The notes: generated by a model from the letters alone, not told the origin. A DNA stretch of 64,000 bases from Phaeosaccion multiseriatum (GCA_965112735.1 OZ218961.1:372001-436000); one strand, 5' to 3'; numbered from the stretch's first letter, positions 30,401 through 56,407 are shown. Translations and numbers: made by a program.

Positions 30401-33102
30401 CTCTCCCTCTCTCCTCTGTCTCCCTCTCTCTCTCCTCTGTCTCCCTCTCTCTCTGTGTGTCTCTCTTTCTCTCTGTCTCCCTCTCTCTCTCTGTGTGTGT
30501 GTGTGGATCTTTGCAGGAGGCTGGTGATAACTTGCCTGAACTCGCACGGAAAACCAAGAATTTCTCCGGGGCTGAAATAGAGGTGAGTGAGAAGGTTAAG
30601 GTGTGAGGGAGTGCGTGGGCGAGTGAGTGAGTGAATGAGTGGGCGGGTGGGTGAGGGAGTGAGTGAGTGGGTGGGTGGGTGAGGGAGTGAGTGTGTGTGT
30701 GAGGGAGAAGACAGCGATAAGGGAGAGAGAGAGCAGAAGGGTGAAGAGCGAAAACAAGGGAAGGGAAGGGAGATCAGACGCGCTTCTTAGCTCACCTACG
30801 CACGCACTTTCCTCATCCACTGCCATCTCTTCCTCCCCATCACACATACGCACGACACATCACACTTCCACCCACCTCCCCATCCACTTTCATCCCCTCC
30901 CCCATCGCCTCCCCCCGCTCTCCCCCTCCTTGTCACCCCACCTCACCCACGCCCCACCCACCCACCCACATACGCACTCACCCACCCACCCCACCCACTC
31001 ACTCACCGACCCCTCATCCATTGACTTACTTCCCACAGGGCCTGGTGAAGAGCGCTGCATCGTACGCCTTCCACCGCAACGTGGATGTGAAGAACCTCGG
31101 GAAGGCTCTCGACGAGGGCAGCCTCAAGGTGGAGTGGGCGGACTTCGAGATGGCCCTCACAGGTGTGTATCACCAACGCGTGCTTACATCATGTGTGTGT
31201 ATGTGTGCGAGTGTGTGTGTGTGCGTGGCGTAGCGTAGGGCCTTGTCTTGCCTCGCCTTCTCTGGTTGCTCTGCACACGCTCCAGTCTCACCCTTTCCCC
31301 TCCTCCTCCTCCTCCTCCTCCTCCTCCTCCTCCTCCTCCCTCTCTCCCTCTCTGTCTTTTACATTTTCTCCCCCTCTCTCTCTGTATATATATCCCTCTT
31401 TCTATCCCCCCCTCCTTTCCTCTCCCTCCCTCTCAGAGATCCAGCCGAAGTTCGGTGCCAACACGGAGGACCTTGAGGCCATGTTCCGTAACGGCATTGT
31501 GCACTACGGATCCAACTTTGACGAGATTGCCACCACCCTAAGGAGACTCGTTGATCAGGTGTGTGTTAGTGGATGTGCATGTGAGTGTGAGTGGGTGCGT
31601 GTGTGTAAGTGTGTGTGTGAGTGACTGACTGAGTGAGTGAGTGAGTGAGTGTGGGACGGAGTGATTAGCCCGAAGGGGGCATGGGCAAGCACACACAGAG
31701 ATTGAATTAGGGCGAGACGGGCAAAGGGAGAAAGAGAGGGAAGAGACACCTCAGGCAGGCGTATGGGGTATGTGCAGGCGTATGGGCATGTGACTCGCTG
31801 ACCGACTCGTCTCTCTCCTCCTGTCTAAACTCTCGCCCCTCTCTCTCTTCTCCCATATCTCCTATCTCTCTGTGTCGCCCATTCCTCTCCTTCTGCCACC
31901 CACCCTACCATCCCTCCCTCCCGCTCTCCTTCTCTCTCCCCCTCCGTCCCTCCCTTCTTCCCTCTTTGCCTCCCATCCCTCCCTCCCGCTCCCCTTCTCT
32001 CTCCCTCCGTCCCTCCCTCCGTCCCTCTCTCCCTCCCTCCCCCCATCTCTCCCTCCCTCCCTCCCTCCCTCTCTCTCCACCCTCCCTCCCTCCCTCCCTC
32101 CCTCCTTTCCCTCCCTCCTTTCCCTCCCTCCCTCCATCTCTCCCTCCCTCCCTCCCTCCTTTCCCTCCCTCCTTTCCCTCCGTCCCTCCCTCCCTCCCTC
32201 CCTCTCTCTGCCCCAGGTGCGGGGCAGCGAGCGCACTCCCCTCATGTCTGTGCTGCTGGAGGGTAAGCCCTTCTCCGGCAAGACGGCAATCGCGGCCCAC
32301 ATGGGAGTCACCAGCGAGTTTCCCTTCGTCAGGAAGGTGCGGTAGTTGGTGATACAACTCACAGCCACGCTCCGTCTCGCTCACTCCGCCTCATTCACTC
32401 GTCCTTTTGTGGGCACTGGTAGCGAGTTTGTGCGTTCGATGTTTAAGAAAGTTCAGACAGAGTATCCGTTTGGAGGGCTCTGCTGAAGATCTTCGCGCCC
32501 TGTTCTGTTGCTCAGCCTCCTCCCTCCTCCCTCCCTCCCTCCCCCTCCCTCCCTCCCTCCCTCCCTCCCTCCCTCCCTCCCCCAAAACACAGATTTCCGC
32601 AGACGACATGATCGGCATGCCCGAGTCTGCCAAATGCGCACACATCAGCAACTGCTTCCTGGAGTCGTACAAATCTCCCCTGTCCCTCATCTTCATCGAC
32701 GACCTCGAACGCATCATCGACTTTGTCAAGATCGGCCCTCGCTTCTCCAACACCGTACTCCAGACACTCCTTGTCCTGCTCAAGAAGTCTCCTCCATCCA
32801 CGGGCCATCGCCTGATGGTGGTGGCGACCACGGCCATCCCGTCTGCCTTGGAGGAACTGCAGCTCGTGGATGTGTTCAACGTGTCTCTCCATGTGCCGGA
32901 GCTGCAGAGCCCGGATGAGATCAAGACCGTGTTGAGGGAGCTTGTACCCATGAGTCAGGCGGACATGGACTCGATTGCCAATGTCATGACCAAGCCGATT
33001 GGCATCAAGCAGCTGCTCATGGTGACGGAGATGGCGCGTAGTGACGAGAATACCGTGGACTGCCATCGCTTCTTGGAGTGCCTGCATACTTGCGGATATT
33101 GA
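25031..33102 (+). CDS. NSF: N-ethylmaleimide-sensitive factor (vesicle-fusing ATPase, Sec18); about 13 exons
   Basis: [70 protein letters not shown]2 GKTAIAA, IDDLER, GPRFSN. Confidence 0.97.
26040..26175. repeat. ~20-22-bp minisatellite (gtcgagggggtcgataaggg) in an NSF intron
   Basis: About 6 degenerate copies. Confidence 0.85.
26417..26880. repeat. ~77-bp purine-rich minisatellite, about 6 copies, in an NSF intron
   Basis: gatcaaag recurs at ~26453, 26530, 26604, 26681, 26758 and 26835. Confidence 0.9.
27830..28042. repeat. (GGGTA)n pentamer tract in an NSF intron (G-quadruplex potential)
   Basis: Read directly. Confidence 0.9.
28465..28795. repeat. ~22-bp minisatellite (atgcctccaatctaatgcctat) in an NSF intron
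   Basis: Multiple degenerate copies. Confidence 0.85.
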
Positions 33103-33773: not shown

Positions 33774-36700
33774 CTACATCCTCGTCCCTCCCTTGCATTC
33801 CAGGCCCAGACCGAGAACTCTCTTCGCCTGGTGTTCGACACCTTCCTCTCCCTTGTGGTACTTCAACGTACCCAATACCGCCTCCACCGCACCCGTGTGG
33901 CCCAGTCTCTTCTTGTTGACCTCATCTACACCCAGATTCGCAACAGCCCAGCATGCCTTCTCTTGGACACCTCTGTCCTCTACGTACTTCACCATGGCCG
34001 TCACCACCGTCTCGCACGCACCCGCCTCGCCCAGTTTCTTCTTGTTGGCCTCATTTACACTCAGATTCACAACAGCCCCGCATGCCTGCTCTTGGACACG
34101 TCTGTCGTCTGCGTTCTTCCCCATGGCCGTCACCACCGCCTTGCACGCACCCGCCTCGCCCAGTCTCTTCTTGTTGGCCTCGTTTCCATTGCTCAGATTC
34201 GCAACAGCCCTGCATGCCTGCTCTTGGACACCTCTGTCCTTTGCGTGCTTCACCATGGCCGTCACCACCGCCTCGCACGCACCCGCCTCGCCCAGTCTCT
34301 TGTTGTTGGCCTCATCTATACTCAGATTCACAACAGCCCCACATGCCTGCTCTTGGACACCTCTGTCCTCTGTGTGCTTCAACATGGCCGTCACCACCGC
34401 CTCGCACGCACCCGCCTCGCCCAGTCTCTTCTTGTTGCCCTCGATTGCACTGCTCAGATTCGCAACAGCCCTGCATGCCCAATACTGGACACCTCTGTCC
34501 TCTGCGTACTTCACCATGGCCTTCACCACCGCCTCGCACGCACCCGCCTCGACCAGTCTCTTGTTGTTGGTCTCGTTTCCACTGCTCAGAGTCACAACAG
34601 CCCCACATGCCTGCTCTTGGACACCTCTGTCCTCTGCGTGCTTCACCATGGCCGTCACCACCGCCTCGCACGCACCCGCCTCGCCCAGTCTCTTGTTGTT
34701 GGTCTCGTTTCCATAGCTCAGATTCGTAACAGCCTGGCATGCCTGCTCTTGGACACCTCTGTCCTCTATGTGCTTCACCATGGCCGTCACCACCGCCTCG
34801 CACGCACCCGCCTCGCCCAGTCTCTTGTTGTTGGTCTCGTTTCCATTGCTCAGATTCGCAACAGCCCTGCATGCCATCTCTTGGACACCTCTGTCCTCTG
34901 CGTGCTTCACCATGACCGTCACCACCGCCTCGCACGCACCCGCCTCGACCAGTCTCTTGTTGTTGGCCTCGTTTCCACTGCTCAGAGTCACAACAGCCCT
35001 GCATGCCTGCTCTTGGACACCTCTGTCCTCTGCGTGCTTCACCATGACCGTCACCACCGCCTCGCACGCACCCGCCTCGCCCAGTCTCTTGTTGTTGGTC
35101 TCGTTTCCACTGCTCAGATTCGCAACAGCCCCGCATGCCATCTCTTGGACACCTCTGTCCTCTGCGTGCTTCACCATGGCCGTCACCACCGCCTCGCACG
35201 CACCCGCCTCGCCCAGTCTCTTGTTGTTGGTCTCGTTTCCACTGCTCAGAGTCGCAACAGCCCAGCATGCCATCTCTTGGACACCTCTGTCCTCTGCGTG
35301 CTTCACCATGGCCGTCACCACCGCCTCGCACGCACCCGCCTCGCCCAGTCTCTTGTTGTTGGTCTCGTTTCCATAGCTCAGATTCGTAACAGCCTGGCAC
35401 GCCTGCTCTTGGACACCTCTGTCCTCTGCGTGCTTCACCATGGCCGTCACCACCGCCTCGCACGCACCCGCCTCGCCCAGTCTCTTGTTGTTGGTCTCGT
35501 TTCCATTGCTCAGATTCGTAACAGCCTGGCATGCCTGCTCTTGGACACCTCTGTCCTCTATGTGCTTCACCATGGCCGTCACCACCGCCTCGCACGCACC
35601 CGCCTCGCCCAGTCTCTTCTCGTTGGTATCATCTACACTCAGAATCGCAACAGCCCCGCATGCCTGCTCTTGGACACCTCTGTCCTCTGCGTGCTTCACC
35701 ATGGCCGTCACCACCGCCTCGCACGCACCCGCCTCGCCCAGTCTCTTGTTGTTGGTCTCGTTGCCACTGCTCAGAGTCGCAACAGCCCAGCATGCCTGCT
35801 CTTGGACACCTCTGTCCTCTGCGTGCTTCACCATGGCCGTCACCACCGCCTCGCACGCACCCGCCTCGCCTAGTCTCTTGTTGTTGGTCTCGTTTCCATA
35901 GCTCAGATTCGTAACAGCCCAGCATGCCTTCTCTTGGACACCTCTGTCCTCTATGTGCTTCACCATGGCCGTCACCACCGCCTCGCACGCACCCGCCTCG
36001 CCCAGTCTCTTCTCGTTGGTATCATCTACACTCAGAATCGCAACAGCCCAGCATGCCTGCTCTTGGACACCTCTGTCCTCTGCGTGCTTCACCATGACCG
36101 TCACCACCGCCTCGCACGCACCCGCCTCGCCCAGTCTCTTGTTGTTGGTCTCGTTTCCACTGCTCAGATTCGCAACAGCCCCGCATGCCATCTCTTGGAC
36201 ACCTCTGTCCTCTGCGTGCTTCACCATGGCCGTCACCACCGCCTCGCACGCACCCGCCTCGCCCAGTCTCTTGTTGTTGGTCTCGTTTCCACTGCTCAGA
36301 GTCGCAACAGCCCAGCATGCCTGCTCTTGGACACCTCTGTCCTCTGCGTGCTTCACCATGGCCGTCACCACCGCCTCGCACGCACCCGCCTCGCCCAGTC
36401 TCTTGTTGTTGGTCTCGTGTCCACTGCTCAGAGTCGCAACAGCCTGGCATGCCTGCTCTTGGACACCTCTGTCCTCTGCGTGCTTCACCATGGCCGTCAC
36501 CACCGCCTCGCACGCACCCGCCTCGCCCAGTCTCTTGTTGTTGGTCTCGTTTCCATTGCTCAGATTCGCAACAGCCCCGCATGCCATCTCTTGGACACCT
36601 CTGTCCTCTGCGTGCTTCACCATGGCCGTCACCACCGCCTCGCACGCACCCGCCTCGCCCAGTCTCTTGTTGTTGGTCTCGTTTCCAGTGCTCAGAGTCG

Positions 36701-39700
36701 CAACAGCCCTGCATGCCTTCTCTTGGACACCTCTGTCCCCTGCGTGCTTCACCATGGCCGTCACCACCGCCTCGCACGCACCCGCCTCGCCCAGTCTCTT
36801 CTCGTTGGTATCATCGACACTCAGAATCGCAACAGCCCTGCATGCCATCTCTTGGACACCTCTGTCCTCTGCGTACTTCACCATGGCCGTCACCACCGCC
36901 TCGCACGCACCCGCCTCGCCCAGTCTCTTGTTGTTGGTATCATCTATACTCAGATTCGCAACAGCCCAGCATGCCATCTCTTGGACACCTCTGTCGTCTG
37001 CGTGCTTCACCATGGCCGTCACCACCGCCTCGCACGCACCCGCCTCGCCCAGTCTCTTGTTGTTGGTCTCGTTTCCACTGCTCAGATTCGTAACAGCTCT
37101 ACATGCCTGCTCTTGGACACCTCTGTCCTCTGCGTGCTTCACCATGACCGTCACCACCGCCTCGCACGCACCCGCCTCGCCCAGTCTCTTGTTGTTGGTA
37201 TCATCTATACTCAGATTCGCAACAGCCTTGCATGCCATCTCTTGGACACCTCTGTCGTCTGCGTGCTTCACCATGGCCGTCACCACCGCCTCGCACGCAC
37301 CCGCCTCGCCCAGTCTCTTGTTGTTGGTATCATCTATACTCAGATTCGCAACAGCCTTGCATGCCTGCTCTTGGATACCTCTGTCCTCTGCGTACTTCAC
37401 CATGGCCGTCACCACCGCCTCGCACGCACCCGCAGCACCGAGCCTGACCCTGACTTCATCGTCGCTGGCCAGGTATAGTACGACGTCAAGCCCTGCTAGT
37501 GCTACATTCACGTCCCCAGCGTGCTTCGAGAGAGCTCGAACCACTTCCTTGCCCATCCCCGCCTGCGCAAGGGGCAAGGCCTCCTCACCTGGACCGAGAC
37601 CGCCAGAGGAGGTGCTCGGACGGGGAAGAGCCGCGATGGCCTTGAGAGCGTGCTGCATCACTTCGCCCACTCCCTCGCCCTCGTAGCTCTGCAGGAGCGC
37701 CACCAAGACGCCGTACTCTCGCCCAGCAAGGGCGCTTGATATATTCCTCTTCACCTCGTCCTTCCCACTGGGTGTAGGCGATGCGCGTCCCTGCTGCTGC
37801 TGGGGCGGTGATGGCGGTACTGCTGGCCACTGGAATGCTGCGAATACTTGGTCCCGTGACGGGGGTACCGAAGAGGGAGAGCCAACTCGCCCTCGGGTTG
37901 CCTTGCTCTTGCCGACAGCGTCGAATCTCCCCCCCTCCTGCCGCTTCCTCGCCTTATCATCCGTAGCTTGGGCATCCGCCTCCCTCTCCTCCTCCTCCTC
38001 CTCCTCCTCCTGTTGCTGCTGGCGAAGCGATGCTGGGCGGGTCCGGCGGCCAACACCTCCACGCGGGTCGCTTCTCTCCTCCACTATGGCGCCCAAAGCT
38101 TGCGAGACGTCGCTGCTGGAGGGTCGCTGGCCTGGGGCCTGCTGCCAGCACTGCCGCATGAGGTCTTCGATGCGCTTGTCCTCTACCACGCATGTCTCCG
38201 GGAGGAGGGGCCTTTCCTTCTTCACGGCCACCCTCCTACATATATGAGCCTGACTCAGTCCTTGAAAGGGAAGCTGGAAGGACAGCATCTCGTACATCAC
38301 CATGCCGAAGCTGTGCAGGAGGGCACGGGCAGCAGTGTGGAAGGAGACGAAGGAACAGCGAAGCGGGTGAGCTAAAGTGGACTACAAGAAGTGACACAGT
38401 GCATTGGCGGCAGTCCGCCGAGGTAGAGAGGTGGCTCCTTAACGAAAGCTTCAGCATGCCCGGCCTGGGAGTGTACGACAGAGAACGAGAGGCACACCTC
38501 ACCCAAAGAGCAAGTTCAAATGCAGCGTCCGCTCAGCCAGCTTGCAAGCAAAGAAATACAGTCATTCACCTACACGCCGCCTCGCTCTCTGCCTCACCTG
38601 TACACATCCGCGGCAGGGGTACCCTTCTCCTCATCCCAAATCTCAGGAGCCATCCAATGATAAGACCCCACCGACTTTGCTCCAGCTGTGCTCATGGAGC
38701 TGCTGCCTGTCTTCATCTGACGAGCGAAAAAGGAGAACAGCAGACGGGGCGGGTAGGAGGTTGGGGCTGGGTGACACGTGGCTGCTGCGTCAGAGAAAGG
38801 CAGGCGAGGAAGTGGGCAGTAGGAGGGCAGCCCCCAAGAGAGCCACCTGTACTATTCCTCTGCTGCTGCCTCTTCTCCGCCACCCTTACCTTGGCCATGC
38901 CAAAGTCGCACACCTTGACCCTATTGCTGGGGTACACGAGGAAGTTCAGGCTCTTGACGTCTCGGTGCAGCACGTCCTCCGCATGGAGGTGGGCCAGGCC
39001 TCGCACACCGTCGTACAGCATCGCCACACGCTCATCCCACGTCGAAGGAGGGGCGTCTGGGCCTCCTTGCTGCTCTCCACCGCCGCACGTTGCGGCGTGC
39101 ATCTGCAGATACTCGTACAAGCTTCCCTCTGGAGCGAGCTCCATCACCACGCACAGCGTGGGCTCCACTGTGCACGCGCCGTACAGAGGCACGATGAAGT
39201 CGTGGCGCAGCCAGTTGTGGACCTTGATTTCGTTGCGGAACTCCTTTAGCTCTTTGGCGCTCAGAGCCGCGCCATTACCGGTGATCACCTTCACTGCCAC
39301 TGTCGTCGTTCTCCGCCACTTGGCGACTCTCACCGCCCCGAAGCTGCCCTGGCCCAGACACCCCGCCGCGCTCTCATCAACCTCGAGGTCGGAAAAATCA
39401 ATCTCCTTGAAGCCTAAGATCCTCTCCCCCGCCTGCAGTCGACTCACCCTCAGCGCCTCCACCACATCCTTGTACCGCTCGTCCATCTTGCTCGTCTTCT
39501 CCTTCTCGTCCTCCAGGTCTTGGAGCAATTTGGTCATGTCCTCCTCTTCGTCCCTTTGACGGTGTGCCTCCTCCTGCTGTGCGGCAAGTCTCGCCCTCAC
39601 CGTCTCGCTCAGCTGAAGGTGCAGTATACACTCATCAAGGCGACTGTGGAATTCCGCAAAGACGCCAATATGTGCCTTGGCGCGGCGCTGGATCTTCCAC

Positions 39701-39954
39701 CACGTCTGAGTTGCGGCATACTCACTGAGCTTGTCCTCAATCTCCCGGACCAGCGCAAGCAGGAAGCGTAGGGCACTATCCCTCTCCTCCTCCCATACCC
39801 CCTCCCTTGTGAGAGCCTGCAGAGGCGCCTCCAGCATCGTGAGCCGGTCAGCGACGCGCTTACACTGCTTGGGGTAGCATTTGACACGCGCTGCGTGGGT
39901 CATGATTGACTGTATACCTGTGAACACCAGACTTACAACAAGCTCGGCCTCCAT
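33774..39954 (-). CDS. MLKL-like N-terminal four-helix bundle + coiled coil + TKL protein kinase + 27 tandem ARM repeats (~1900 aa); exons 38890-39954, 38598-38716 and 33774-38310
   Basis: N-terminus VKCYPKQCKRVADRLTMLEAPLQAL...RLDECILHLQL resembles MLKL_NTD. Kinase motifs GQGSFG, VAVK, HRDVKSLN, DFG, WMAPE and DVYSFG are joined by two GT-AG introns. ARM consensus is LGEAGACEAVVTAM..VQE.AC.AV..LS. Confidence 0.9.
33905..37445 (-). repeat. Coding tandem array of 27 near-identical 129/132-bp units (43/44-aa ARM repeats)
   Basis: Counted from the translation; divergent capping repeats on both sides. Confidence 0.95.
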
Positions 39955-40395
39955 GATCAGCACTACTAGGCTGGGCGATGGTCTTCCCTTCGCTGCACGT
40001 TGTGGTATATATAGTCCTCGTCGTCCAAAAGAAAGACAAGGAGAAATGGGAAGGAAGAAAAAGACGTCCCCCCTTCTCTCTCTCGGTAATTACACTAGCA
40101 CCACCATCGGCCCTTCTTATGCTCTTCGAATGGGGAATTTCCCCCCCCTAATGGATGGCCTCTGGGATCTGAGATACTTTTCATCGTTCGATCCAGATCG
40201 ATCGATCACGCATCGATCACGCAATTCGAAGCAATTTGAACCTAAGGTTACGTATTGTACCATCATCTGCAAGGCCTCCACATCCAGCGTCACAAATGGC
40301 TGAGCTTGACAAGAACTTCTCTTATCTCTCTTCCTCCTCCACAGCCGGTGTATACATAATCTCCTCCACAGCGGGAGGAAGAAGGAGGCGAGGTG

Positions 40396-42175
40396 ATGGC
40401 AAAGCTTGCGGAGATAATCACGCGTTCACCACTCCTGGCAGCAGCTTCAACTCATGCGGACGGTGGCCCCTTGGGCGAGGGCGGGGGCCTGTTCGCTCGC
40501 TTGGGGTTGCGAGACTTGCCTCCCCTGGAAAGTGTGCGAGTCACTCACCATATCGGTGAAGTCAGCAAGACGAGACTGAGCGAGGGCGGCGGCGAGCCTA
40601 CCATCAGCAATGTCATTTTATTTCACTGGAACGGCCGAGTGATCTACACGGCCTTCATTCCAGAGGAGGGGGAGCGGTGGTCGCATATCCGCACGTGCCT
40701 TCTCTTGCTGGACAGCAATCCTTACACGCTGCTCCAAATGGCAGCACAGGAAGAGGAAGAGAAGACGGCCCAAGAAGAGCAACAGAAGCAGCAGCACCAG
40801 CACAAGCAGGAGCAGCACCAGCAAGACACCAACAAGGCCGATGCTCTGCTGCTCTTCGTGTCTGGCGACCGCTCTCAGGTCGGCAAGAGCAGTGCATGCC
40901 TCGGTCTCCTGGGATCCTTGCTCGCGCTGGGCTTCGCTCCCTCCGAGCTGGCCTACATCAAGCCCGCCACCCAGTGCGAGGCGCCCCAGCTCGTCGGGAA
41001 GTGGTGCCACGCCAAGGGAATCCGCGGCAGAGGTACGAAGAGCGTGGACAGATGAGTGATTTCTTTCCACCACTCAATCATTAAACCTAAACAGGGCCCC
41101 ACCCCGCCACACGAGACCGCTTGAAGGGAAGCCAACTTGTAGCGGAGTATAGGAGGGTGGGGGTGTCTTGTTTGTGGCATACGTTGCCCACCTCGATAGA
41201 GCAACTACTGCTCAGGGTACAGCTGTCGTTGACTGCCGTCTGCATCGTGTTAAGGCAGCTCCTCCTCCTCCCCCACTCACCACTGACCCTCCCTTACGTA
41301 CGCATTGACCTGCGCTGTATTCTCGATGCTGCACCATCCCCTTCCTCCCTTTCTCCCCCACTCCTCCACTCCTCACACCCTCACCTCTTCCACCCCCTCA
41401 TCCCCCCACTCCCCCACCCTCTCCTCCCCCACACCCCGCCCCCCACTCCCCGCACTCTCTTCTCTTACCCCCAGGCATTGGCCCTATCGTCTTCTACAAG
41501 GGCTTCACACGTGCCTTCCTCAAGGGGCAGGGCGGCACCTCACATGAGCTTCTGGCGGACGCTGTTGACGCCGTCAGAGACATCGCCCGAGGGAAGCGCC
41601 TCGTCATCGTGGACGGAGTTGGGTACCCCGCAGTTGGGTCCATCTGCGGTGTAAGCAACGCGGATGTGGCGCATGCATTGGGCGCACCGGTGATATTGAT
41701 TGGCAAGCAGGGTGTGGGGGATGCGGTAGACTCGTTCAATCTCAACGCGACCTTCTTCGCCAGCAAGGGGGTGGACGTGTTGGGAGGGGTGTTTAACCGC
41801 ATCAGCGAGAGCGGCTTTTACAGCGTGGACAAGTGCAAGGAGGCCATCAGCTTGTACTTTGCACGCGAGAGGCCCACCCTCATGCCCTATGGCTTTGTAC
41901 CCGAAGTTGCTCCGCTGAGTACAAGTAGCAGTGGCAGCGGGCCTTCTCCTTCTTCGCTGCCGACTGCGGCCGAATCAGCTTCAGCTTCAACCTCAGCGCC
42001 AGTCCAACCCTCGTCTCCTCCTCCTCCTGCTGCTGCTGCTGCTGCTGCTGCTGATGCTGATGCTGCTCCTCCTGCTCCCGCTCCGATGGCAGTAGAGACC
42101 GCAGAAGAACTCGCGAGCCTCTTTGACAACACTACCACCACTACCACCACCACCACTACCACTACCACCACCACC

Positions 42176-42216
<41 letters not shown>

Positions 42217-43459
42217 GGCTGGAGATGAGGCCGAGGGTGGGGAGTGCGGCACCTCTGGCAGCAGAGTGGTGCTGGTGGACTTTGCAGCGGCATGGTGTGG
42301 CAACTGCAAGAAGCTCACCCCGGAGCTGCGGCACTTGGCTGCCACGTACGCAGGAGGCAGGCGGTGTTTCCGAGTTGCCACTGTGGATGTGGACGACGCG
42401 CAGGAGCTCGCTGACGCCTATGATGTGTCCGCCCTGCCTACCGTTGTGCTGCTCGAGAAGGAGGAGGGAGGAGGAGGAGGAGGAGGAGGAGGAGGAGGAG
42501 GAGGAGGAGAGATGAAGGAGATTGGCAGGTTTGTGTGTGGTGGGAGTGCGTCTGAGGGAATGAGTGGGCAGTATGGGTATGTACGTGCTTTTGTCTCTCT
42601 CTTTCCCTCTCTGCCTGTCCCCCTCTCTCTCCTTCTCTCTCCCCCTCCCTCTCTCTTTCCCTCCCTCCCTTCCCCCCTCTCTCCCTCCCACCCTCCCTCC
42701 GAACCTCCCGCTCTAGCCTTTGGCGGCACTTCAGGCCGGAGACTTCCTTTTCCCCTTCACCTCGCCACCCCTTCATACTGCTCCTCTGCTGTATCACCAA
42801 CTGTTCCTGCTGTCCCCTCTCCTCCTTTTCTTCTCTACTCTCACTCTTTCCTTTCCGCGGTCTCTACGTGGACGATGTATTCTCGATAACGATATAATAT
42901 CGATGGGCCATGTATGTTCATTAGGTACAGCGGAAGCGATCCCGCAGAGCTTCGGAGGTTTGTGACGAAGCACTTGGACAACCCAGGGGGGGCATCTAAA
43001 GATGGCAGTCAACGCACGGCCGCCGAGGGTGCTGCTGGTGCTCATGGCGGTGCTGGAGGAAGCGGGGCTACCGCTGGCAACGACGACGGTGAGGAGGAGG
43101 AGAACGAATTGCAAAGCCAGCTGGCGTGGGCTGATCACTTCATCTCGGTGTTTAGCGAGCGAGTGGATGTGGAACGGTTGGTGCAAGACCTGCAGCAGCG
43201 GCGTCGCCAAAGTCGGAGCGTTGGTCAAGGCGAGATGCCATCTGTAAGTGGGGCTCCCACCATCACCACCACCAGCAGCAGCAGCAGCAGCAGCAGCGGC
43301 GGCAACGGTAGCGGAGGAGGTAGCAGCAGCAGTCTCGAGAAGGAGCAGGGCAGAGCAGTTGGTGATACAGCAGTCGAGGGAGGCTCGGTGAAACGGCCGA
43401 GACTGACACGGGAGGAGATTGAGAGTGGCGCAAAGAAGGAAGGCGCTGCGGGGGGATGA
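40396..43459 (+). CDS. BioD/AAA_26-like P-loop protein with an inserted thioredoxin domain; 3 exons; start uncertain (40396 or 40738)
   Basis: FVSGDRSQVGKSS, AYIKP, IVDGVGYPAVGSICGVSNADVA, VLGGVFNR; Trx motifs LVDFAAAWCGNCKKLTP, VDVD, VSALPT. Introns ~41033-41474 and ~42529-42924. Confidence 0.8.
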
Positions 43460-46647: not shown

Positions 46648-49631
46648 GCACGCACGCACATACCCACACAGGTATGTCAGCACATACTCACGTAAGCACA
46701 CACACATAGAACACATGCACACGGCGGACGATAAATCACGCACGGGGTACAATGTGCCTGTGCGGGGTATTCCCTCCGTCGCTTCGATGTGCCGCGCCCG
46801 CACACACACGGAGACACATGACAACAGAAGAGAGACGGGGAATATCGACCGGGACAGGGAGAGGGAGACAAGTGGGAGACAAGGGAAAGAGGGACAGGGA
46901 GAGAGAGAGAGACAGAGAGAAAAAGACATGGAGAGAGACAGAGAGAGGCAGATGGAGGGAGAAGGACAGAGAGAGAGAGAGAGGCACATGGAGGGAGAAG
47001 GACAGAGAGAGAGAGAGGGGAGAGGGAGAGAGGAAGGGAGAGAAGAGAGTAGAGAGAGCGAGAGAGAGACATCGAGAGAGAAGGGGATAGAAAGGCACCT
47101 ACGTCGCATAGAGAAGGCCACACAACACACAAACAAGCACCACACCCTCCCCTCACCTCTTGAGGCCGGTCCTTTGTCGCGGACTGAGCACGTGCTGCCC
47201 CCTTTCTCGAAGGTCGGCAATGCTCGTGTAGCCCGACTTGATGAGGTTCTCAGCACTGGCAAAGCCCACCCAAGGGATGCCCATAAACTTGATCATGAGC
47301 TGTAGTTGGGGGTCGCTGCGGCAGATACCCAAGATTGACAGGCCTTTGGGGCCTCGGGATACGAGCTCGTTCAGCCAGGCGATTGGTACCTTGTCCTCGG
47401 GATATGAGCTGGGGAATGAGGAGGGAGGGACAGAGAGGAGGAGAGAGAAAGAGGGGACGAGAAGGAGAGAAAAAACCGAGGGACAGGGGAAAAGGAGAGA
47501 GAGGGAGGGGGAGACAGAGCGAGGGGGGGGGAGAGAAAAAGAGAAGGCGAGCAGGAGATAAGTGATAAACAGAGGGAGAGAGAGAGAGAGAGAAGAGGAA
47601 GATAGAGTGTGGACATGGCCAGAGTGTTGGCCAGCAAGGACAGGGGGCGGAACTGGAAGCGGAATGAGGGGGGGGGGGGCGCAGAACGTGAGGAGGACGG
47701 GGCCCCTGACCCAAGCAATTTGGGTGCTTTCTCGAGCCTTTGCTCTCTTCCCTCCCCCATGAATCACCGCAGGAAAGCCTCCCTACCTCCCTCCCCTCCT
47801 CCCCTTCTTCCTTCCTTCCCTCCCTCCCCCTTACCCTCACCCCGCCTCCCTGCCTCACTCACCCCTTGTTCTTCTTGAAAAACTTTTTGAGTCCATGCTG
47901 GGAGTCGACTTTCTTGGTGTACATCTTTAACAGTCCGATGAGCTTCTGCAAATTGCGTGCATTCCACTGCAGGTCGCTGAGGACCGCGCCGGGACCGCTG
48001 GCGCTCTTGGTATTCACCTGTTTCGTGTTGGTTTCAGGCTTAGTTTCCAGTTTGCAATGACCTCAAACTACCGATATCGACATTGAAATATAGCGAACAC
48101 GCTCCAACCACTACCGATATCGACATTGAAATATAGCTAACACTCCAATGATATTGAAATATAGCGAACACGCTCCAACCAGTCCAGAGCTGCCTCGCTT
48201 CACTTTTTCGGCCTCGAGCCACAAGTGAGTACAGTTCCTCCCAGTCAGTTTTTGAGTTTCAGTTCATTTGTCTGACCTCGAAATCGGAACACGAAAGACC
48301 TCCATATCGACCTCGATATCGACGTCGATAGACACGCTTCTCACCTTGGCCTGTAGGTACGAATACAGCTCCTCGAGAGGGCCGGTGAGGTGCTTGTTCC
48401 GGTTGGCGGCAGTCACGGACAGCTGGCAGGCGAACTTCTCTCGATCGGGCGGATTAAAGCGCCCGCGCTTCCTCCTTGATCCTCCTCCTCCTGTTCCTTC
48501 GACTCCTCCTCCTGCTTCCGCTGCTGCTCCTCCTTGGGCTGCTTCCTTGCGTTCTTTGGGGGACCCAAGTCTCTCCATGTAAGGCATTTTGATGTTCAGG
48601 TTTCTTGAGGGCGGAACGAAGACGGAGGGCGCGGTGGAGGGGTGGAGGGGTGGAGGTGTGGAGGGAGGGAGGGAGGGAGGGAGGGAGGGGGAGAGGGTAG
48701 CAGGGGCATATGGGCAGAGAGGGGAAGCGGGGGCAGCACAGGCATATGGGCACAAAGAGGAACGAGGTGAGCACGGGAGAGGGTGAAGCGGGGGCAACAG
48801 AGGAAGGCTATCACCCTGGAGTAAGAGATGGCACCGCAAAGTCAAATATGGCAGCCGACGGGTTGCCGCGTTGCTAGCTTAGCGACAGCGCCAGCGCCTG
48901 AGAGAGCCTACCTCGAGATCGTACAAGCTATGGAATGCACGCACGCACACACGCACGCACGCACCTACGGTCACCCGATTCCGCCCCACAGATGGCCCTT
49001 CACCACAAACATGCACGCACACACACACACACATACACACACACACACACCCTCATCGAGGCACAGGTCAAGCAATCAGACAGAGCGCTGGAGACATGGA
49101 CGCACGTACCCGTCTTCAGGCAGCGCCCCCGCCATTCCTGACTTGCGATGGAGCTCGTCGAAGCTCTCACAGTTGGCGTTATATTCGTCTGTATCCCCAC
49201 CACCCGCCGCCTCTCCAACAGAAGGCTTCTCCCACAGCGTCAGGGACGACGCTCTCGCCTTCCGATGCTCCTCGAATCCACGGCCTTGGGAGTCGTTCTG
49301 TGAAGAGTACACCGAGCAGGAGCTCTCCAGAGAAGAGACTGCAGAGACCCCCCCTCCCCCTTCCCCTCCCCTTTCCCCTTCCCCTTCCCCTTTCCCTCCC
49401 CCTTTCCCTCCCCCTCCCCCCTCCCCTCCCCCTCCCCCTCCCCCTCCCCCTCCCCCTTCCCCTTCCCCTCCCCCTTTCCCTTCCCCTCTCCCTTCCCCTC
49501 CCCCTTCCCCTTCCCCTCCCCCTCCCCCTCCCCCTTCCCCTTCCCCTTCCCCTCCCCCTTCCCCTCCCCCTCCCCTTGGCGAAGGAGTGTCCTTTGGGAA
49601 GGGGGAGTCTCCACCCCCCTGCTGCTGCTGT

Positions 49632-49697
<66 letters not shown>

Positions 49698-49776
49698 AGG
49701 TTGTTCTCTCGGTTTTGCCCGCTCTTGTGGTGTACGACCAGGGCCGCCGACAACGGCTTTGGTTGCTGTTTCGCCA

Positions 49777-49815
<39 letters not shown>

Positions 49816-50534
49816 CCTGACCCGAGCAATGGTGGTCCTTGTCCTCCTCGCAAGGCCCATCGACGCCCCTGACCAACGCGTTATCGCTCCTCGCTCCGCT
49901 TTCTTTGCTGCCGCCCGTCTCCTCCTCCTCCTCCTCCTCTGTGGCGAAACGCACATAGTACGCCCCTTCGTCCAGCACCTTTCCACTCCGCAGGCAGTCC
50001 ACCAGCCATTGAGAGACAACCATCACTACACCCCCTCGTTCCTCCTCTTCCTCTTCCATCTCCGTCGCCTCCTCCTGCTCCTTCTTCCCCTCACCCCCTT
50101 CCATACAGCCTTGGGCCTCCGCTCCCATCGTCGTCACCACCGGGACGCCACCCCGCCCCCCTCCCCTCCTAGCGTGTGACTGTGCTCGTGGGCTTGACCG
50201 GCAGCCCCATCCCCCTGTCTGCCCTTCGGACACCATCGGAGTTGCGCAGGCAGCCTGTGTGTGCCTCTGCCCCGTGCGTGCGTCCTTTACCTTGCCCCAG
50301 AAGCCCTTTGCTCCAAGGGGCTGGGCATAGTTCCAGTCCACGAGGAGATGTGTGGTGGCGTTCGTCAGTTGGGTGGTTAGCACGCCACCCAAAGCCGAGA
50401 GCTTCTTGTTCCAAATACCCACCCTCTTGGCCGAAATGTCCACTCCCTCCTCCACGGCGCAAATGTTGACATCGCTCCACTCTCGATGGCTTCCCCCCCC
50501 ACCAGCAAGGCCTTCACTGACACTATTGCTGCTT

Positions 50535-50572
<38 letters not shown>

Positions 50573-51706
50573 ACTGCTGCCAATGCGGTCAGCCTCGCTC
50601 TGAGCCGTGGTCGTGGTCGTGGTGGTGGTTGTGGTGGCAGCATTACCCGCCCCCTCGGGAGTACACCTCTTCGCCTTCCTCCTTGTCGTGTTGGTACTAC
50701 TCCTACCATCACCACTACAGTTGTTGTTGTTGCTGCTGTTGGAGCTGCTGCTGCTGCTGCTGCTGCTGCCCCTGACCCAGGCTATGGCGGTCGCGTCATT
50801 CTGGGGGTGAGTCATACTGGGGGCGCAATAGATAACGTTCTCCTTCGAGCGCTGGTCCAGAGGCTTCGCACCTCCTCCTCGTCCTCCTCCTCCTCCTCCT
50901 CCTCCTCCTCCTCTCCTCTGACCATCCCAAGCGCCACAAGTCCTTCCCCTGACCCTGGACTGCTTCTGCTTGTGTGCCTGCCCCTGCAGAAGAGCCTGCC
51001 TCCCTGCTTCTCCGTCCGCCTTCCTGGACCTCCTCGAGGGGAAGCCCGGGCCCCAACTACTAGGGATGAGCATCTTTGCATCTCGAGCGACACCTCCTCC
51101 TCCTACTGCTACTGCTGCTGCTGCTGCTGCTGACGCAGTTTTCGCTCCACTACTCCTACTCCTCGCAAGTGCCCTCTTCGGACCCTGATACACACCACCA
51201 CCACCACCACCACCACCACCGCCACCGCCATCGCCGCCGACACTGCCATGCTTGAAGCTGCAGTCTGCGTCACTGAAGGAGCGCTTCCGAAGGCGGCTGC
51301 CCCCCCTGTGCCCCATTGGAGCTGCTTTGCCACCGCTGCTGCTTCGGTGGTTGCCTCCCACCAAGCGGGGCACCCTCGTGACGTACTTTGACGGGATGGA
51401 TCGACGCACACTCGTGTCCTTGAAATAACCCCCCCCAGCCTCCTCCTCCTCCTCTCCCTCGACCTGCATATCTGAAACTGTTGCCTCTCCATCCTCCCTC
51501 GGCATCAACGGGGGTGGGGGAGAAGCCCGGCGAAGAGTAAGAGTTAAACCTCCTCCCCGGCGCTGCTCGTCTGGAGGGCGATCGCTTGCCTCCCCCCCCC
51601 CCTCCCCCTCCCCCTCTTCCTCACCCCCCTCCCCTCCTGTGCCTCTCTCCCGTTGCTGAGTAGCGCTGCCACTGCTGCCATTGCTGCTGCGGTTTGCTTG
51701 CCTTGG

Positions 51707-51747
<41 letters not shown>

Positions 51748-52243
51748 CAACGTGCTCCTCCTCAGCCCCTTCGGTGCTCTTCTGCTTGTCCGGTAGCACC
51801 TGCACCTGCTCTCCTCGTGTCCCCTGACCCTGCCCCACAGCGTGGAGCAGATCGATTGGAAGAGGCCCACCTCCTCCTCCCTCTTCTCCAGCAGAGGAAG
51901 GAGAAAGAGCAGAAGGGGCCGTAGCAGCAGCAGAAGTAGCAGTAGCACTAGAAAGGAGGCAGGTGCCACTAATGCCGCTGGTGCTGATAGTGCTTCTTCT
52001 CGTCCTGCTGTGGGCATCAATACCCTTGGCGATCTGGGGCCCGTTGTTGTTCGGTGGCAGCAGCGCCGCCACCACCACCACCACCACCTCCTCCTCCTCC
52101 TCCTCCTCCTCCTCCAGCTCCCGGAGTGCTGTGGAAAGCTTGGCAGTATATGAGTTGAAGGCGTGCCTAAGGTCCATGGCGTCTCCAAAGTAGGTGCCGG
52201 CAGTCATGGTCGAGCCCAAAGCCGCCGAAGTATTTACAAGCAT
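44278..52243 (-). CDS. POLL: Family X DNA polymerase (Pol lambda-like) with a BRCT domain and a very long low-complexity N-terminus; about 9 exons; start uncertain
   Basis: BRCT TTHLLV...[74 protein letters not shown]. Confidence 0.88.
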
Positions 52244-52851
52244 AGTACAGAGGAACCCTCCTCCCTCCTCCCCACCACCGCCTTCCTTAACATTCTACAA
52301 CGCCACGCTACTTTAGAAGAGGGAGGGCAGCTCGGCAGCAGGCCATTGGCGGGAAGCCCAGACGGCGTGGGCAGCGCGCCAAAAAAAAAGGGTACGGAGA
52401 GAGGCAGATGTGGTCTTCAGCGCATGCGTCGCAGTCCTCCCCCATACCACGCTACTCTAGGGAGAGAGAGAAAGCACTCGTAAGTCGCGCCAAGAGGGGA
52501 AAGAAGGAAAGAGTGGAGAGAGTGGATGGTTTCGACATCCAGAGTCATCGAGTCACAGATGGTCGCACATTCACAAACGTCCCTCTCCTGATCCTCTCCC
52601 CTCCACTCCACTCCACTACTGTGCCTACTCCCGGGAAGGGTGGGAGATAGACCCCCCTCTGTCTCTCTTGGAAAGCCTTTAACGGGGTGGACAGGAGGCA
52701 GTTCCATCCCCTTGCTCTTGACCCTTGGCCCCGTCTCCCACGCCTTCGTACAGCGCAGGACACAGAGTGTAGCCTTCTACCATCACATCTTCCCTCATCG
52801 AGGAGCAGCACTGAAGGATATTTGGCAGCGGACAGAGGGGAGGGGGGTACT

Positions 52852-53880
52852 ATGCGGCGGAGGAGGAGGATGGCAGCGACTGGTGCTGGTCCCAGTGCTC
52901 CTGCTTCAGATGAAGGAGGGAATGGGCTGCTCTTTGAAGCTTGCCACGAGGTCTTGGCACAGCCCGAGCTGCTCCGTTCTGTCTTGGGGCACGTGGGAGA
53001 GGGGCACTTCTGCTTCGTCGCAAGTGCGAGTAAGACGTGGAAGGCCAGCTACACTGCTTTGTATCCAGTAATGGAGACAGCTTTCTCATCTGTGGTCAGC
53101 TCTGTGGAGTGCACGAACTGGGCGACAAATCGGCAGGGGCTCGAGCTTTATGTGAAGGTCTTCGAGGCCGCTGCCCGGCACGGAGATGTCGAGGTATGCA
53201 AGGCCCTTTATGCCAAAAGGTGTCCCTGGTGTGTATCTGTGTGTTTCGCAGCACCGGAGAACGAAAAGCATGGCCTGCAAGTCCTGAAGTGGCTGCGCTC
53301 GGAGGACCTTCCCCGCAAGAAGCAGTGCCCGTGGGCCCTTATGGTCTATGAGTTGGCTGCAAGTAAAGGGCGTTTGGAGATGCTCAAGTGGCTGCTATCG
53401 GAGGATGCCAACACACAACTCCGTACGAATGCAGACTTTGATCTTGAATCTTTGTCATCTTGGGACGGCGCTTGTATGGGTGGGCAAATCCCCGTCCTGG
53501 AATGGCTTCTCGAGCATCCTCCCACCAGAGCCTGGTTGGAAGAACCAACACATGACGAGCATAATTGGCGTACGGGAGCCTCCTCTGCCGCTTCCTGTGG
53601 CCATCTCGAGGCACTGAAGTTCCTCCACGCCAATGCTCGCCACCTCTGTGATTGGGATTTGTGGGTCTGTAGTTGTGCAGTCGCACACGGCAAGAGCCTT
53701 GCTGTGCTGAAGTGGCTCCGGTCGGAGGAAGTGCAGTGTGAGTGGGACGAAAGATCGTGCCCACAGGTCATCAGGGACAGTGTGTTGGAAGATCAGGAAT
53801 GGCATATCGAGGCCGCAACATTTGAGGAGATCAAGCAGTGGGTGCACGCCAATGGCCACCCCTGCGACTGCCAGGACTGA
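52852..53880 (+). CDS. Intronless F-box-like + ankyrin-like repeat protein, copy 1 (most divergent)
   Basis: PELLRSVLGHV..FVASASKTWK followed by repeats such as AARHGDVEV, CPW, GRLEMLKWL and GHLEALKFL. Confidence 0.78.
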   Translation: MRRRRRMAATGAGPSAPASDEGGNGLLFEACHEVLAQPELLRSVLGHVGEGHFCFVASASKTWKASYTALYPVMETAFSSVVSSVECTNWATNRQGLELYVKVFEAAARHGDVEVCKALYAKRCPWCVSVCFAAPENEKHGLQVLKWLRSEDLPRKKQCPWALMVYELAASKGRLEMLKWLLSEDANTQLRTNADFDLESLSSWDGACMGGQIPVLEWLLEHPPTRAWLEEPTHDEHNWRTGASSAASCGHLEALKFLHANARHLCDWDLWVCSCAVAHGKSLAVLKWLRSEEVQCEWDERSCPQVIRDSVLEDQEWHIEAATFEEIKQWVHANGHPCDCQD

Positions 53881-54193
53881 GAGGAGAACAAGCTCGCACA
53901 GATGGAGAGAGAGACATGGGGGGAGGGGTGGGGGGGCAGTTAGCGTACGTTTGGGGAGGCTTCCGGTGAGCGTGGGTCAGTACAGAGCAGGATGGACGGC
54001 TGTGACTGTCGCACTTCGAGGAGCTGCTGGGAATGTTGAGGCTTCAGTGAGTACGTCTTTATGGTTCGACGTGGACTTCGGCAGCGAGTACAGCCTGACA
54101 GAGCTTGAGTGAGCAAGTGGAGCAGCAATTCTCTTATAGGAATCAACCTAAGAATTGCTCATGAATTATGTGCGTGTGTTGTGTGTGGTGTGT

Positions 54194-54225
<32 letters not shown>

Positions 54226-54713
54226 TGGGCCTCAGGGCCTCCACATCCAGACTCACAGATGGCGGGCCTGACAGACCTTAGGGGTATATAAACCTTGAGC
54301 TTAGCTCCATAAGATATACAGGCCGCAAGACCTCCCACGCGTGAATAAAGTAGGCAGCATAAGGAAGGGGGCGAGGCTGATAGAAAGAAAGGATTCTGCT
54401 GGCGCTGGTAAGTGCCTGCTACCGGAGATAGCCCGCCCCTCTGTTCTTGAGGGGGAAGCGGGGAAGCAGCTGTAAGGAAGAGGAGTGAGAGGAGTTATAA
54501 CAGATGTATGAATCATGCTGGCCATCTGGTCTCTCGGCTGCTGCCCCTCCTCCACAGCCGCTCACTCTCTCTCTCTCTCTCTCCCTCCCTCTCCCCTCCA
54601 CCTTTCCTTCCACTCCCCCCTTCTTCAGCAACTTATCTGCTCCGGCCAGCAGGGCTTACTAGAGGTGCTTACTTCCTCGCATTTATCCCAAGTTCTCCTG
54701 TTTCGAGGAAACA

Positions 54714-55811
54714 ATGGAGACGAGGCTGCAGCGGAGGAGAACGGCATTGGGGCACGGGGAGGCGCCACATGACTCTACCCAGGGAAGGAGGCTGAGACGG
54801 TCTCCAGTAGCAACAGCATGTGGGGGTGCCAGTGGTACCGCTGCTTCAAGTTCCGGATACAATGGGCTGCTCTTTGAAGCTTGCCACGAGGCCCTGGAGA
54901 ATCTCGAGCTGCTTCGTGCCATCTTGGAGCACTTGGGAAAGGGGCACTTCTGCTTCGTGGCTGGTGTGAGCAAGGATTGGAAGGCCAGCTACACCGCTTT
55001 GTATCCAGCAGTGGAGACAGCGTTTTCGTCTGTGGTCAGCTCAGTGGAGTGCGTGAACTGGGCGACAGGTCGGCAGGGCCTCGAGCTGAGTGTCAAGCTC
55101 TTCAGGGCCGCTGCCCGGTACGGAGATGTCGAGGTATGCAAGGCCCTCCATGGCAAGGACTGTCGCTGGGATGAGTATGTGTGTCACGAAACAGCGAAGA
55201 ACAGCAAGCATGGCCTGAGAGTACTCAAGTGGCTCCGCTCAGAGGACCTTCCCGACAAGGAGCAGTGCCCATGGGACGTTAGCGGCTGCGAAATGTGTGG
55301 CCTAGCTGCACTTGAAGGGCGCTTAGATATGCTCAAGTGGTTGCTGTCGGACGACGGTGGGGCAGACTTTGATGCCTTCTCTTGGAACATCGCATGTGAA
55401 GGAGGGGATATTCGCGTCGTGGAATGGCTTCTCTGGCATCCTCTCACGAGAGCCTTGCTGGAAGAAGGTTATGACGAGTGGCGCAGTGGCGCTGTGTGTG
55501 CAGCTGGCAAGGGCTGTCTCGAGGTACTGCAGCTGCTCCACGCCAATGCTGACCACCTCTGTTATTGGGATGCGTATGTCTGTACAGAGGCAGTCATGGA
55601 AGGTAAGAGCCTTGCTGTGCTGAAGTGGCTCAGATCGGAAGAAGTGCAGTGTGAGTGGGACGAAGGGTCGTGCCCACAGGTTATCAGGGACAGAGGAGTG
55701 TATGAAGAGTTACATGGGGAGGGCGCGGTATGGGACATCGACGCCAAAACCTTTGAGGAGATCAAGCAGTGGGTGCACGCCAATGGGCACCCCTGCGACT
55801 GCCAGGACTGA
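54714..55811 (+). CDS. F-box-like + ankyrin-like repeat protein, copy 2
   Basis: 365-aa ORF paralogous to copies 1, 3 and 4. Confidence 0.82.
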   Translation: METRLQRRRTALGHGEAPHDSTQGRRLRRSPVATACGGASGTAASSSGYNGLLFEACHEALENLELLRAILEHLGKGHFCFVAGVSKDWKASYTALYPAVETAFSSVVSSVECVNWATGRQGLELSVKLFRAAARYGDVEVCKALHGKDCRWDEYVCHETAKNSKHGLRVLKWLRSEDLPDKEQCPWDVSGCEMCGLAALEGRLDMLKWLLSDDGGADFDAFSWNIACEGGDIRVVEWLLWHPLTRALLEEGYDEWRSGAVCAAGKGCLEVLQLLHANADHLCYWDAYVCTEAVMEGKSLAVLKWLRSEEVQCEWDEGSCPQVIRDRGVYEELHGEGAVWDIDAKTFEEIKQWVHANGHPCDCQD

Positions 55812-56407
55812 GAGGAGAACAAGCTCGCACAGATGGAGAGAGAGACATGGCGGGAGGGGTGGAGGGGCAGTTAGCGTACGTTTGGGGAGGCTTCCGGTGA
55901 GCGTGGGTAGGTACAGAGCAGGATGGACGGCTGTGGCTGTCGCGCGTCGAGGCGCTGCTGTGAACGTTTGTTACAAGCGGTCTATCAGCAGAGGGAGGTG
56001 CCCTCGTTATCGTGTCTGTGGCATGTTCGCGGGACACTTTGCGCCCTTCGGCTGGTGGGAGGCTTCAGTGAATACGTATATATGGTTCGACGAGGACTTC
56101 GGCAGCGAGACGTGTCAGACTGAGATTGAGGGAAGTAAGTGGAGGGCATTTTATTGTTTTAGTAACTTACAGGAATCAATCAACCTAATCGGCCACCCTT
56201 ACGTGCTATCTGCTATCTGCTATCTGCTATGGCCGGCGCCAGCCGGCGTGCTACAACTGTATCTGCTATCGAGAATGTGGTCGATAGCAATAACACGTCA
56301 GCGGTCGAACCTAAGAATTATGTGTGTCAGGGGGGGGCTAGTGAAGGGCTGTCAACGGTGGCGAGATTGGAGCGTAGCATGGCACTGATCAGGGAGGATG
56401 TTTTGTT

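Follow-up and report, generated by a model that had tools for sequence, protein, structure and literature searches.

Can the units of a repeat array be kept almost identical while a handful of their codons diversify? This question is raised by a stretch of 64,000 nucleotides (nt) from Phaeosaccion multiseriatum (GCA_965112735.1, OZ218961.1:372001-436000; hereafter the window, with positions counted from its first letter). The window encodes 27 near-identical armadillo (ARM) units on its minus strand, within a gene that also carries an MLKL_N-type helical head and a protein kinase. Our analysis suggests that the array is probably a germline, concertedly evolving sensor domain under diversifying selection, forming part of a receptor-like protein (MLKL_N head, kinase and ARM repeats) that is not an NLR.

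Results

Twenty-seven ARM units in a single exon

Tandem Repeats Finder locates a single tandem array at 33877-37433 (period 132, 27.2 copies, 91% matches), on the minus strand and within a 1509-codon open frame (33774-38303). When this frame is cut at the anchor motif G-E-A-G-A-C, 27 in-frame ARM units are obtained at 33903-37439, 18 of them 44 amino acids (aa; 132 nt) and 9 of them 43 aa (129 nt) in length. A first-pass annotation, made from the sequence, had placed 27 near-identical units at 33905-37445, which agrees to within a few bases. It had also put the array within one exon, and indeed all 27 units lie in one open frame and one uninterrupted 4.5-kb exon, which a transcript contig (X5, see below) enters without a splice. 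It gave neither the strand (minus) nor the gene context (MLKL_N and kinase). A scan of the window with a 33-nt framework word returned 27 copies at up to 3 mismatches, compared to 0 expected, all of them inside the array. The array and its flanking parts are as follows.

33903..37439, minus strand: 27 near-identical ARM units of 129 or 132 nt (Tandem Repeats Finder, anchor motif, codon tables)
37440..37718, minus strand: degenerate N-terminal ARM-like repeats, a putative cap (helical in the AlphaFold2 model; Pfam ARM_LRRK2 match from aa 250 of the exon-3 open reading frame)
33774..33902, minus strand: degenerate C-terminal cap unit and stop codon (translation, anchor motif)
Unit starts (high coordinate), minus strand: 37439, 37310, 37181, 37049, 36920, 36791, 36659, 36527, 36395, 36263, 36131, 36002, 35870, 35738, 35609, 35477, 35345, 35213, 35081, 34949, 34817, 34685, 34553, 34421, 34292, 34160, 34031

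Core units, defined as units 2-22 (n = 21), share 92.3% identity at the nucleotide level and 86.5% at the amino-acid level, the latter rising to 96.1% once eight variable and loop columns are set aside. That nucleotide identity exceeds amino-acid identity is itself a sign of excess amino-acid change. With this mean amino-acid identity over ~900 aa, the array lies above the bound used for fungal-type arrays (repeats >85% identical over at least 100 aa).

The units match Pfam Arm (PF00514) with 292.7 bits against a cut-off of 20.6 (E=8e-90). An AlphaFold2 (AF2) model of the cap and units 1-8 displays regular H1, H2 and H3 helices in each unit (predicted local distance difference test, pLDDT, 83.9; predicted template modelling score, pTM, 0.78). 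A Foldseek search with this model gives a template modelling (TM) score of 0.87 to the engineered ARM protein 4rv1, and ~0.8 to importin-alpha, beta-catenin and Vac8. The original assignment of the units as ARM repeats is hence supported by both profile and predicted fold, the latter agreeing with the right-handed superhelix of solved ARM proteins.

Five hypervariable columns on helix 3

Variation was tabulated by column, the codon of column c (c up to 36) in a unit starting at S spanning S-3(c-1)-2 to S-3(c-1). The codon tables identify columns 25, 28, 31, 32 and 35 of each unit (minus strand) as hypervariable, with the following residues across the 27 units.

Column 25: Q 15, M 8, K 3, W 1 (CAG/ATG/AAG/TGG)
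Column 28: R 7, W 7, G 7, Q 4, K 2
Column 31: A 18, T 5, V 4
Column 32: N 17, T 7, I 3
Column 35: S 10, V 5, I 4, N 4, Y 3, T 1
Loop: IDD or VDD in 43-aa units; S/N/Y/T-GNE in 44-aa units

Every variant listed in the first-pass annotation, including the two-length loop, was found in the codon table and dot alignment. The accompanying claim of a fixed codon position 3 holds for columns 25, 28, 31 and 32, and fails for the array as a whole: segregating sites of the core units are split 9/10/10 over codon positions 1/2/3. This third-position variation in the core is due to the two loop forms, between which several third positions differ. The reported near-identity even at synonymous sites is correct in so far as silent variation is low, with the qualification that 5 minimal silent events were counted among the 16 long core units. 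The loop forms differ at columns 34-38, with no fixed difference between them over the remaining 39 codons. Their behaviour fits that of two old unit lineages; the framework common to both lineages fits homogenisation, and a single complex mutation creating the alternative loop could also explain it.

In ARM solenoids, the helix-3 face constitutes the ligand groove. Importin-alpha binds peptide through a Trp/Asn ladder, and the conservation of this helix-3 ladder in consecutive repeats defines the importin-alpha type of peptide-binding ARM protein. In the AF2 model helix 3 comprises columns 20-33, for example in unit 9:

36297..36338, minus strand: helix 3 of unit 9, columns 20-33 (AF2 helix boundaries, codon tables)

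A helical wheel places the five variable columns on or just after helix 3 within a 120-degree arc, and the invariant residues A26, C27, A29, V30 and L33 point away from this arc. Among PDB sequences, designed consensus ARM proteins match best, and the helix-3 segment aligns residue for residue with the designed-ARM segment L-Q-E-A-L-W-A-L-S-N-I-A-S-G. Column 25 corresponds to E of the designed ARM, column 28 to W, column 31 to S, column 32 to N and column 35 to S. Modelled position, clustering within the arc and alignment with the designed pocket together argue for the first-pass proposal that the variable sites lie on the groove-forming helix 3. Numbering presumably relates array columns 24, 25 and 28 to repeat positions 29, 30 and 33, respectively.

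Trp is found at column 28 in 7 of 27 units and Asn at column 32 in 17, with both occurring together in 3. With Asn and Trp so often replaced, the array is unlikely to bind peptide in the canonical importin-like manner over its full length of 27 units. Peptide-induced shifts have been observed mainly on helix 3 of ARM proteins (PMC10684580), and repeat positions 29, 30 and 33 are the pocket residues of engineered ARM proteins (PMC11228518).

Amino-acid change exceeds silent change at five codons

To compare amino-acid-changing with silent change, minimum mutational events were counted per codon column, because the genealogy within the array is unreliable; the counts refer to the 16 long core units. 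Columns 25, 28, 31, 32 and 35 hold 12 amino-acid-changing events over 12.3 sites, and the other 39 codons hold 7 over 89.7 sites. Relative to the silent reference (5 events over 30 sites), this corresponds to ratios of ~5.9 and 0.47, respectively. The five columns hold 12 of the 19 minimal amino-acid-changing events, an excess with binomial p=4.8e-4, or p=1.2e-3 when each extra amino-acid allele is taken as one event. Ranked by events, the top five codons account for 13 of the 19, for which a uniform model allowing for the post hoc choice gives p=0.0014. Pairwise Nei-Gojobori ratios are more modest than the event count, at 2.5 for the five codons, 0.8 elsewhere in the core and 1.5-1.6 over all columns. 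Furthermore, variants at these codons occur at intermediate frequency, and most silent variants are singletons. Positive selection at a few binding-face codons, as in fungal-type arrays, is thus indicated by event counts rather than by a likelihood site model.

It could be argued that the array is a young tandem expansion under relaxed constraint, in which the five positions are merely unconstrained surface and the framework is frozen by recency, with no positive selection. The low overall divergence (nucleotide identity 92%), the all-column pairwise ratio of only 1.5-1.6 and the few events would agree with such a scenario. However, neutral sites are expected to change at the silent rate, which the five codons exceed about six-fold (p=5e-4); their intermediate-frequency variants, set against mostly singleton silent ones, are likewise not what it predicts. 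The same columns also vary in a much older array from Phaeothamnion (see below), which has kept its framework through many silent changes. A recent, unconstrained expansion is on this evidence improbable.

Combinations and proposed homogenisation of the units

Over the variable columns, 19 of the 21 core units have distinct haplotypes. Columns 25 and 28 are unassociated with the other variable columns, and at least 3 recombination-or-homoplasy events are needed for columns 25 versus 28 and at least 5 for 28 versus 32. Columns 31, 32 and 35 and loop length are tightly linked (permutation p<0.005 for column 32 versus 35 and for 32 versus loop length), and columns 31-37 form linked blocks, with no incompatibilities for 31-32, 32-35, 35-37 or 31-37 and one for 31-35. 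The shuffled combinations of the first-pass annotation are therefore real for columns 25 and 28 versus the rest, whereas columns 31-37 travel as blocks. Recombination, its proposed source of the combinations, is one of two possible explanations: the incompatible sites lie 9-12 nt apart, so that recurrent mutation to preferred residues explains them as well as very many crossovers would.

Near-identical unit pairs are not adjacent (10/18, 7/10, 9/13, 15/21, 2/4 and 11/14), and similarity between neighbours does not exceed that of randomly drawn pairs (p=0.5). The most divergent units are the edge units 1, 23, 26 and 27. Divergent edge units are the classical pattern expected under unequal crossing-over, and a signature of concerted evolution. 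A three-unit higher-order period was considered and rejected, the post hoc p=0.007 for offsets 3, 6, 9 and 12 becoming p=0.29 upon correction for all offsets.

Programmed or somatic diversification within an individual, by assembly of the lamprey VLR type or by a diversity-generating retroelement, would be a different source of variety, and one we find hardly credible. It has no direct support: DNA-run contigs do carry unit junctions unseen in the compared part of the array, which are explained by other units or paralogues. The eight large open reading frames (ORFs) scanned in the window, three of which are ankyrin genes, contained no donor cassettes, reverse transcriptase or other machinery. 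The changes are not biased to one base, and germline evolution explains the pattern fully.

An expressed gene with MLKL_N head and kinase

The array forms the C-terminal part of a three-exon gene, all on the minus strand.

33774..39954, minus strand: whole gene, 3 exons, spliced coding sequence of 5721 nt encoding 1906 aa (MLKL_N, kinase, linker, ARM array; spliced X5 contig)
39535..39912, minus strand: MLKL_N-type N-terminal helical domain, aa 15-140 (Pfam PF22215)
38097..39360, minus strand: protein kinase domain, spanning both introns (Pfam PK_Tyr_Ser-Thr, Pkinase)
38717..38889, minus strand: intron 1, 173 nt, GT..AG (skipped by the X5 contig)
38311..38597, minus strand: intron 2, 287 nt, GT..AG (skipped by the X5 contig)
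37719..38096, minus strand: low-complexity linker, poly-Glu and Pro/Ser-rich (translation; TCC repeat at 37975-38011)

Logan contigs of four runs were compared with positions 35990-40100, run X5 representing a second sample and study. One 2352-nt X5 contig covers 37417-38310, 38598-38716 and 38890-40100, joining 38310 to 38598 and 38716 to 38890. As it skips two GT..AG introns, the gene is expressed and has three exons. The spliced coding sequence is in frame with a single terminal stop. Pfam assigns MLKL_N and kinase to the upstream exon, and the kinase C-terminus and ARM repeats to the large exon. The MLKL_N match (PF22215) has E=2.9e-10 and 40.2 bits against a cut-off of 27, and a single-sequence AF2 model of exon 1 renders this region helical at low confidence (pLDDT 48.5). 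The spliced protein contains every one of the kinase motifs GxGxxG, VAVK, HRD, DFG and APE, from which the kinase looks catalytically competent, unlike that of MLKL. Pfam finds MLKL_N, kinase and ARM only, and no NOD domain (NACHT or NB-ARC).

Contigs from the three runs of the first sample are unspliced DNA, and in the linker and exon 1 they show heterozygous-like variants. As X5 shares some of these variants, the locus is polymorphic in the species. Minor-haplotype variants were seen at 37588-37629, 38923-38975 and 39181-39505 in DNA contigs of the first sample (S1), some of them also in the second (S2), with 14 differences over 325 positions in one X4 contig. Such variants suggest heterozygosity and/or a close paralogue of the head. 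The X5 contig matches the reference to 37417, 23 nt into unit 1, after which 69 nt (37349-37417) differ; the divergent stretch is in-frame and ARM-like, reading about A-V-T-V-V-M-A-N-K-T. It may come from a strain allele of this array or from a paralogue, or the contig may be a chimera joined at a shared word.

These contigs also bear on whether the array is real but of a length and unit order produced by the assembly (collapsed, expanded or mis-ordered), which would make the combinations partly artefactual. The short-read Logan contigs break inside the array and never bridge it, a point that counts against the sensor reading too, and of the words sampled from the stretch, only 34-67% are present in the runs. 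Against an artefact, 4.5 kb of reading frame are uninterrupted and the region is free of N, and the 19 distinct haplotypes among 21 core units are likewise not expected of one. Exact internal repeats reach 271 nt at most, so that the units would be placed unambiguously by any long read. Words from the array were recovered in two independent samples, and in the transcript contig the linker continues into unit 1. We consider an assembly product distinctly improbable.

Related proteins in stramenopiles

Searches of a 5.8-billion-sequence collection with the whole exon and with units 2-8 returned no protein of more than 46% identity, and scans of metagenome contigs with a protein pattern and with 33 nt of DNA were both without matches. 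The named best matches are all from stramenopiles (Phaeothamnion, Tribonema, Ectocarpus and Hondaea). An exhaustive exon-1 search combined with Pfam shows the MLKL_N-kinase head to be widespread in ochrophytes, with differing C-terminal parts:

P0226 (KAJ8614307.1), Chrysophaeum taylorii: near-identical ARM repeats, 10 units, threefold copy of a 3-unit block, single exon
P0071, Phaeothamnion confervicola: older ARM repeats, ~6 units
P0157, Cladosiphon okamuranus: near-identical LRR repeats
P0222, Pylaiella littoralis: LRR repeats
P0128, Discosporangium mesarthrocarpum: LRR repeats
P0247: Sel1 repeats
P0126 and P0136, Ectocarpus species: no repeats

For the three proteins bearing LRR (leucine-rich repeat) units, the Pfam MLKL_N match is below cut-off or absent, and their heads align with the P. 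multiseriatum protein by phmmer. The Chrysophaeum and Phaeothamnion proteins resemble it in combining MLKL_N, kinase and a single-exon ARM array with variation at the same helix-3 columns. They differ from its 27 units in having 10 and ~6, respectively, the Phaeothamnion units being old with many silent differences. Best local identity is 45% for the Phaeothamnion protein; that from Chrysophaeum was matched only via the kinase region (36%). The Chrysophaeum units vary at W/R/G and D/N positions of helix 3. In Phaeothamnion, the units have the same framework and vary at the same columns (25, 28, 31, 32 and 34-37) amid many silent differences. This pattern indicates purifying selection on the framework in addition to recent homogenisation, and recurrence of the variable sites across lineages.

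Kinase or death-related heads bear near-identical repeat arrays in other algae as well. The Cladosiphon protein has a homologous kinase head with 24-aa LRR units that are 85% self-identical, and P0115 of the cryptophyte Teleaulax amphioxeia combines a caspase-like domain with near-identical 43-aa ARM units.

An endogenous scaffold or regulatory kinase, of the cytoskeleton or trafficking type, would use its solenoid to bind the cell's own partners, unit differences tuning housekeeping interactions. Kinase-ARM proteins with diverged repeats are indeed common in stramenopiles and other protists, nothing links the present gene to infection, and it is expressed in an ordinary transcript data set. 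However, housekeeping ARM repeats are diverged, whereas the present units are near-identical with a site-specific excess of change. The MLKL_N head likewise argues against such a role, as do relatives that combine the same head with different repeat types as in receptor families. We regard the scaffold role as somewhat unlikely.

Comparison with known repeat systems

The repeat domains of fungal NLRs combine concerted evolution with diversifying selection on binding-face residues (Dyrka et al. 2014, PMC4986451). The HET-E/HET-D/HNWD WD40 arrays, and their ANK and TPR counterparts, resemble the present array in having repeats >85% identical with few hypervariable binding-face positions, and the likeness to HET-E/HNWD arrays drawn in the first-pass annotation fits this published description. 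Many members furthermore have an N-terminal cell-death head (HeLo) related to the MLKL four-helix bundle, in parallel with the MLKL_N head found here. The P. multiseriatum protein differs in its ARM repeats, which the PMC4986451 survey (WD, ANK, TPR) does not list, in having a kinase with intact motifs in place of NACHT/NB-ARC, and in its stramenopile algal host.

Closer in host are the LRR-ROCO and NB-ARC-TPR candidate receptors of the ochrophyte Ectocarpus, which likewise carry repeat arrays with selected residues. Positively selected concave-face residues have been described for these, and both shuffling of repeat modules and the model of concerted evolution with diversifying selection were proposed (Zambounis et al. 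2012, PMC3341825). In the Ectocarpus receptors each repeat occupies one phase-0 exon, allowing exon shuffling, whereas here 27 units are contained in one exon. Repeat type and signalling domains also differ, and PMC3341825 makes no mention of armadillo repeats.

MLKL, the executioner of animal necroptosis, and its plant and fungal counterparts similarly have an MLKL_N helical domain followed by a kinase-fold domain. MLKL is a pseudokinase without a C-terminal sensor, whereas the protein described here has all catalytic motifs, rather than the degenerate ones of the MLKL family, followed by a 29-repeat ARM domain. The MLKL four-helix bundle and its HeLo and CC relatives are membrane-targeting executioners (PMC10197012).

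Designed ARM proteins and importin-alpha provide the best sequence and fold matches, and protein engineers randomise the same helix-3 pocket positions as vary here. Those proteins have 4-7 units; the present one is natural, has 27 units and keeps the Trp/Asn ladder in part. According to PMC3890296, the PRDM9 zinc-finger array is a single-exon coding minisatellite with a homogenised framework, hypervariable contact residues and a mosaic of units. The ARM array shares the single exon, the homogenised framework, the hypervariable (here predicted) contact residues and the mosaic of unit types. PRDM9 contacts DNA and its array polymorphism is documented, whereas the ARM array is predicted to bind protein.

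A proposed sensor mechanism

If the array is indeed a sensor domain, unequal crossing-over and/or gene conversion between the 132-nt units would keep the three-helix framework near-identical, silent sites included. Selection would favour amino-acid change at columns 25, 28, 31, 32 and 35, on the exposed helix-3 face and the following loop. A long superhelix would result, with 27 different pocket variants along its groove; the repertoire of binding specificities proposed in the first-pass annotation is likewise hypothetical. By analogy with MLKL and the HeLo- or CC-headed receptors of plants and fungi, ligand binding might activate the kinase. The N-terminal helical bundle might then be released to act on membranes, in signalling or regulated cell death, suggesting a possible role in immunity.

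Several considerations weigh against this reading. Event counts are small, and parsimony counting ignores the genealogy of the units; gene conversion or selection on codon use may also lower the silent rate. Surface exposure of the five columns is a prediction from alignment and from the periodicity of the helix. Of the 27 units, 10 have another residue in place of the backbone-binding Asn and only 7 have the Trp. Finally, the protein has no NOD domain and is hence not an NLR, which makes the NLR analogy architectural only.

Near-identical arrays whose binding residues are hypervariable are a hallmark of recognition receptors, as in fungi (NLRs), brown algae (LRR/TPR) and vertebrates (PRDM9, VLR). 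The diversified sensor proposed here would extend this principle in two respects, to the armadillo fold and to a NOD-less signalling part consisting of an MLKL-type head and an apparently active kinase. In the searchable literature we found neither published hypervariable natural ARM arrays nor algal MLKL_N-kinase-repeat proteins. More tentatively, it is possible that ochrophytes possess a NOD-independent receptor class, with an MLKL-type membrane-attacking head, an active-kinase gate and interchangeable, concertedly evolving ARM, LRR or Sel1 sensors. In such a class, the 27-unit ARM array would serve as a natural modular library of helix-3 pockets, sensing pathogen or non-self proteins and triggering necroptosis-like death. 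We offer a necroptosis-like sensor-executioner in algae as a hypothesis. The array may also be viewed as a natural analogue of designed armadillo binders, and its 27 pocket variants could help to show how specificity depends on helix-3 residues.

Other features of the window

Downstream of the ARM gene lie two (CTCC)n microsatellites of 51 and 16.5 copies. Three ORFs with Pfam ankyrin repeats are located 15-20 kb from the gene, and two further open frames are found between.

32001-32208 and 32519-32581: (CTCC)n microsatellites, 51 and 16.5 copies, respectively
49076-52243, minus strand: 1055-aa open frame, no Pfam match at E<=0.001
52687-58928, plus strand: three ORFs of 362-397 aa, Pfam ankyrin repeats
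41609-42889, plus strand: ORF with a run of ~15 Thr then ~13 Asn, adjoining a thioredoxin-like WCGNC motif and then a poly-Gly tract

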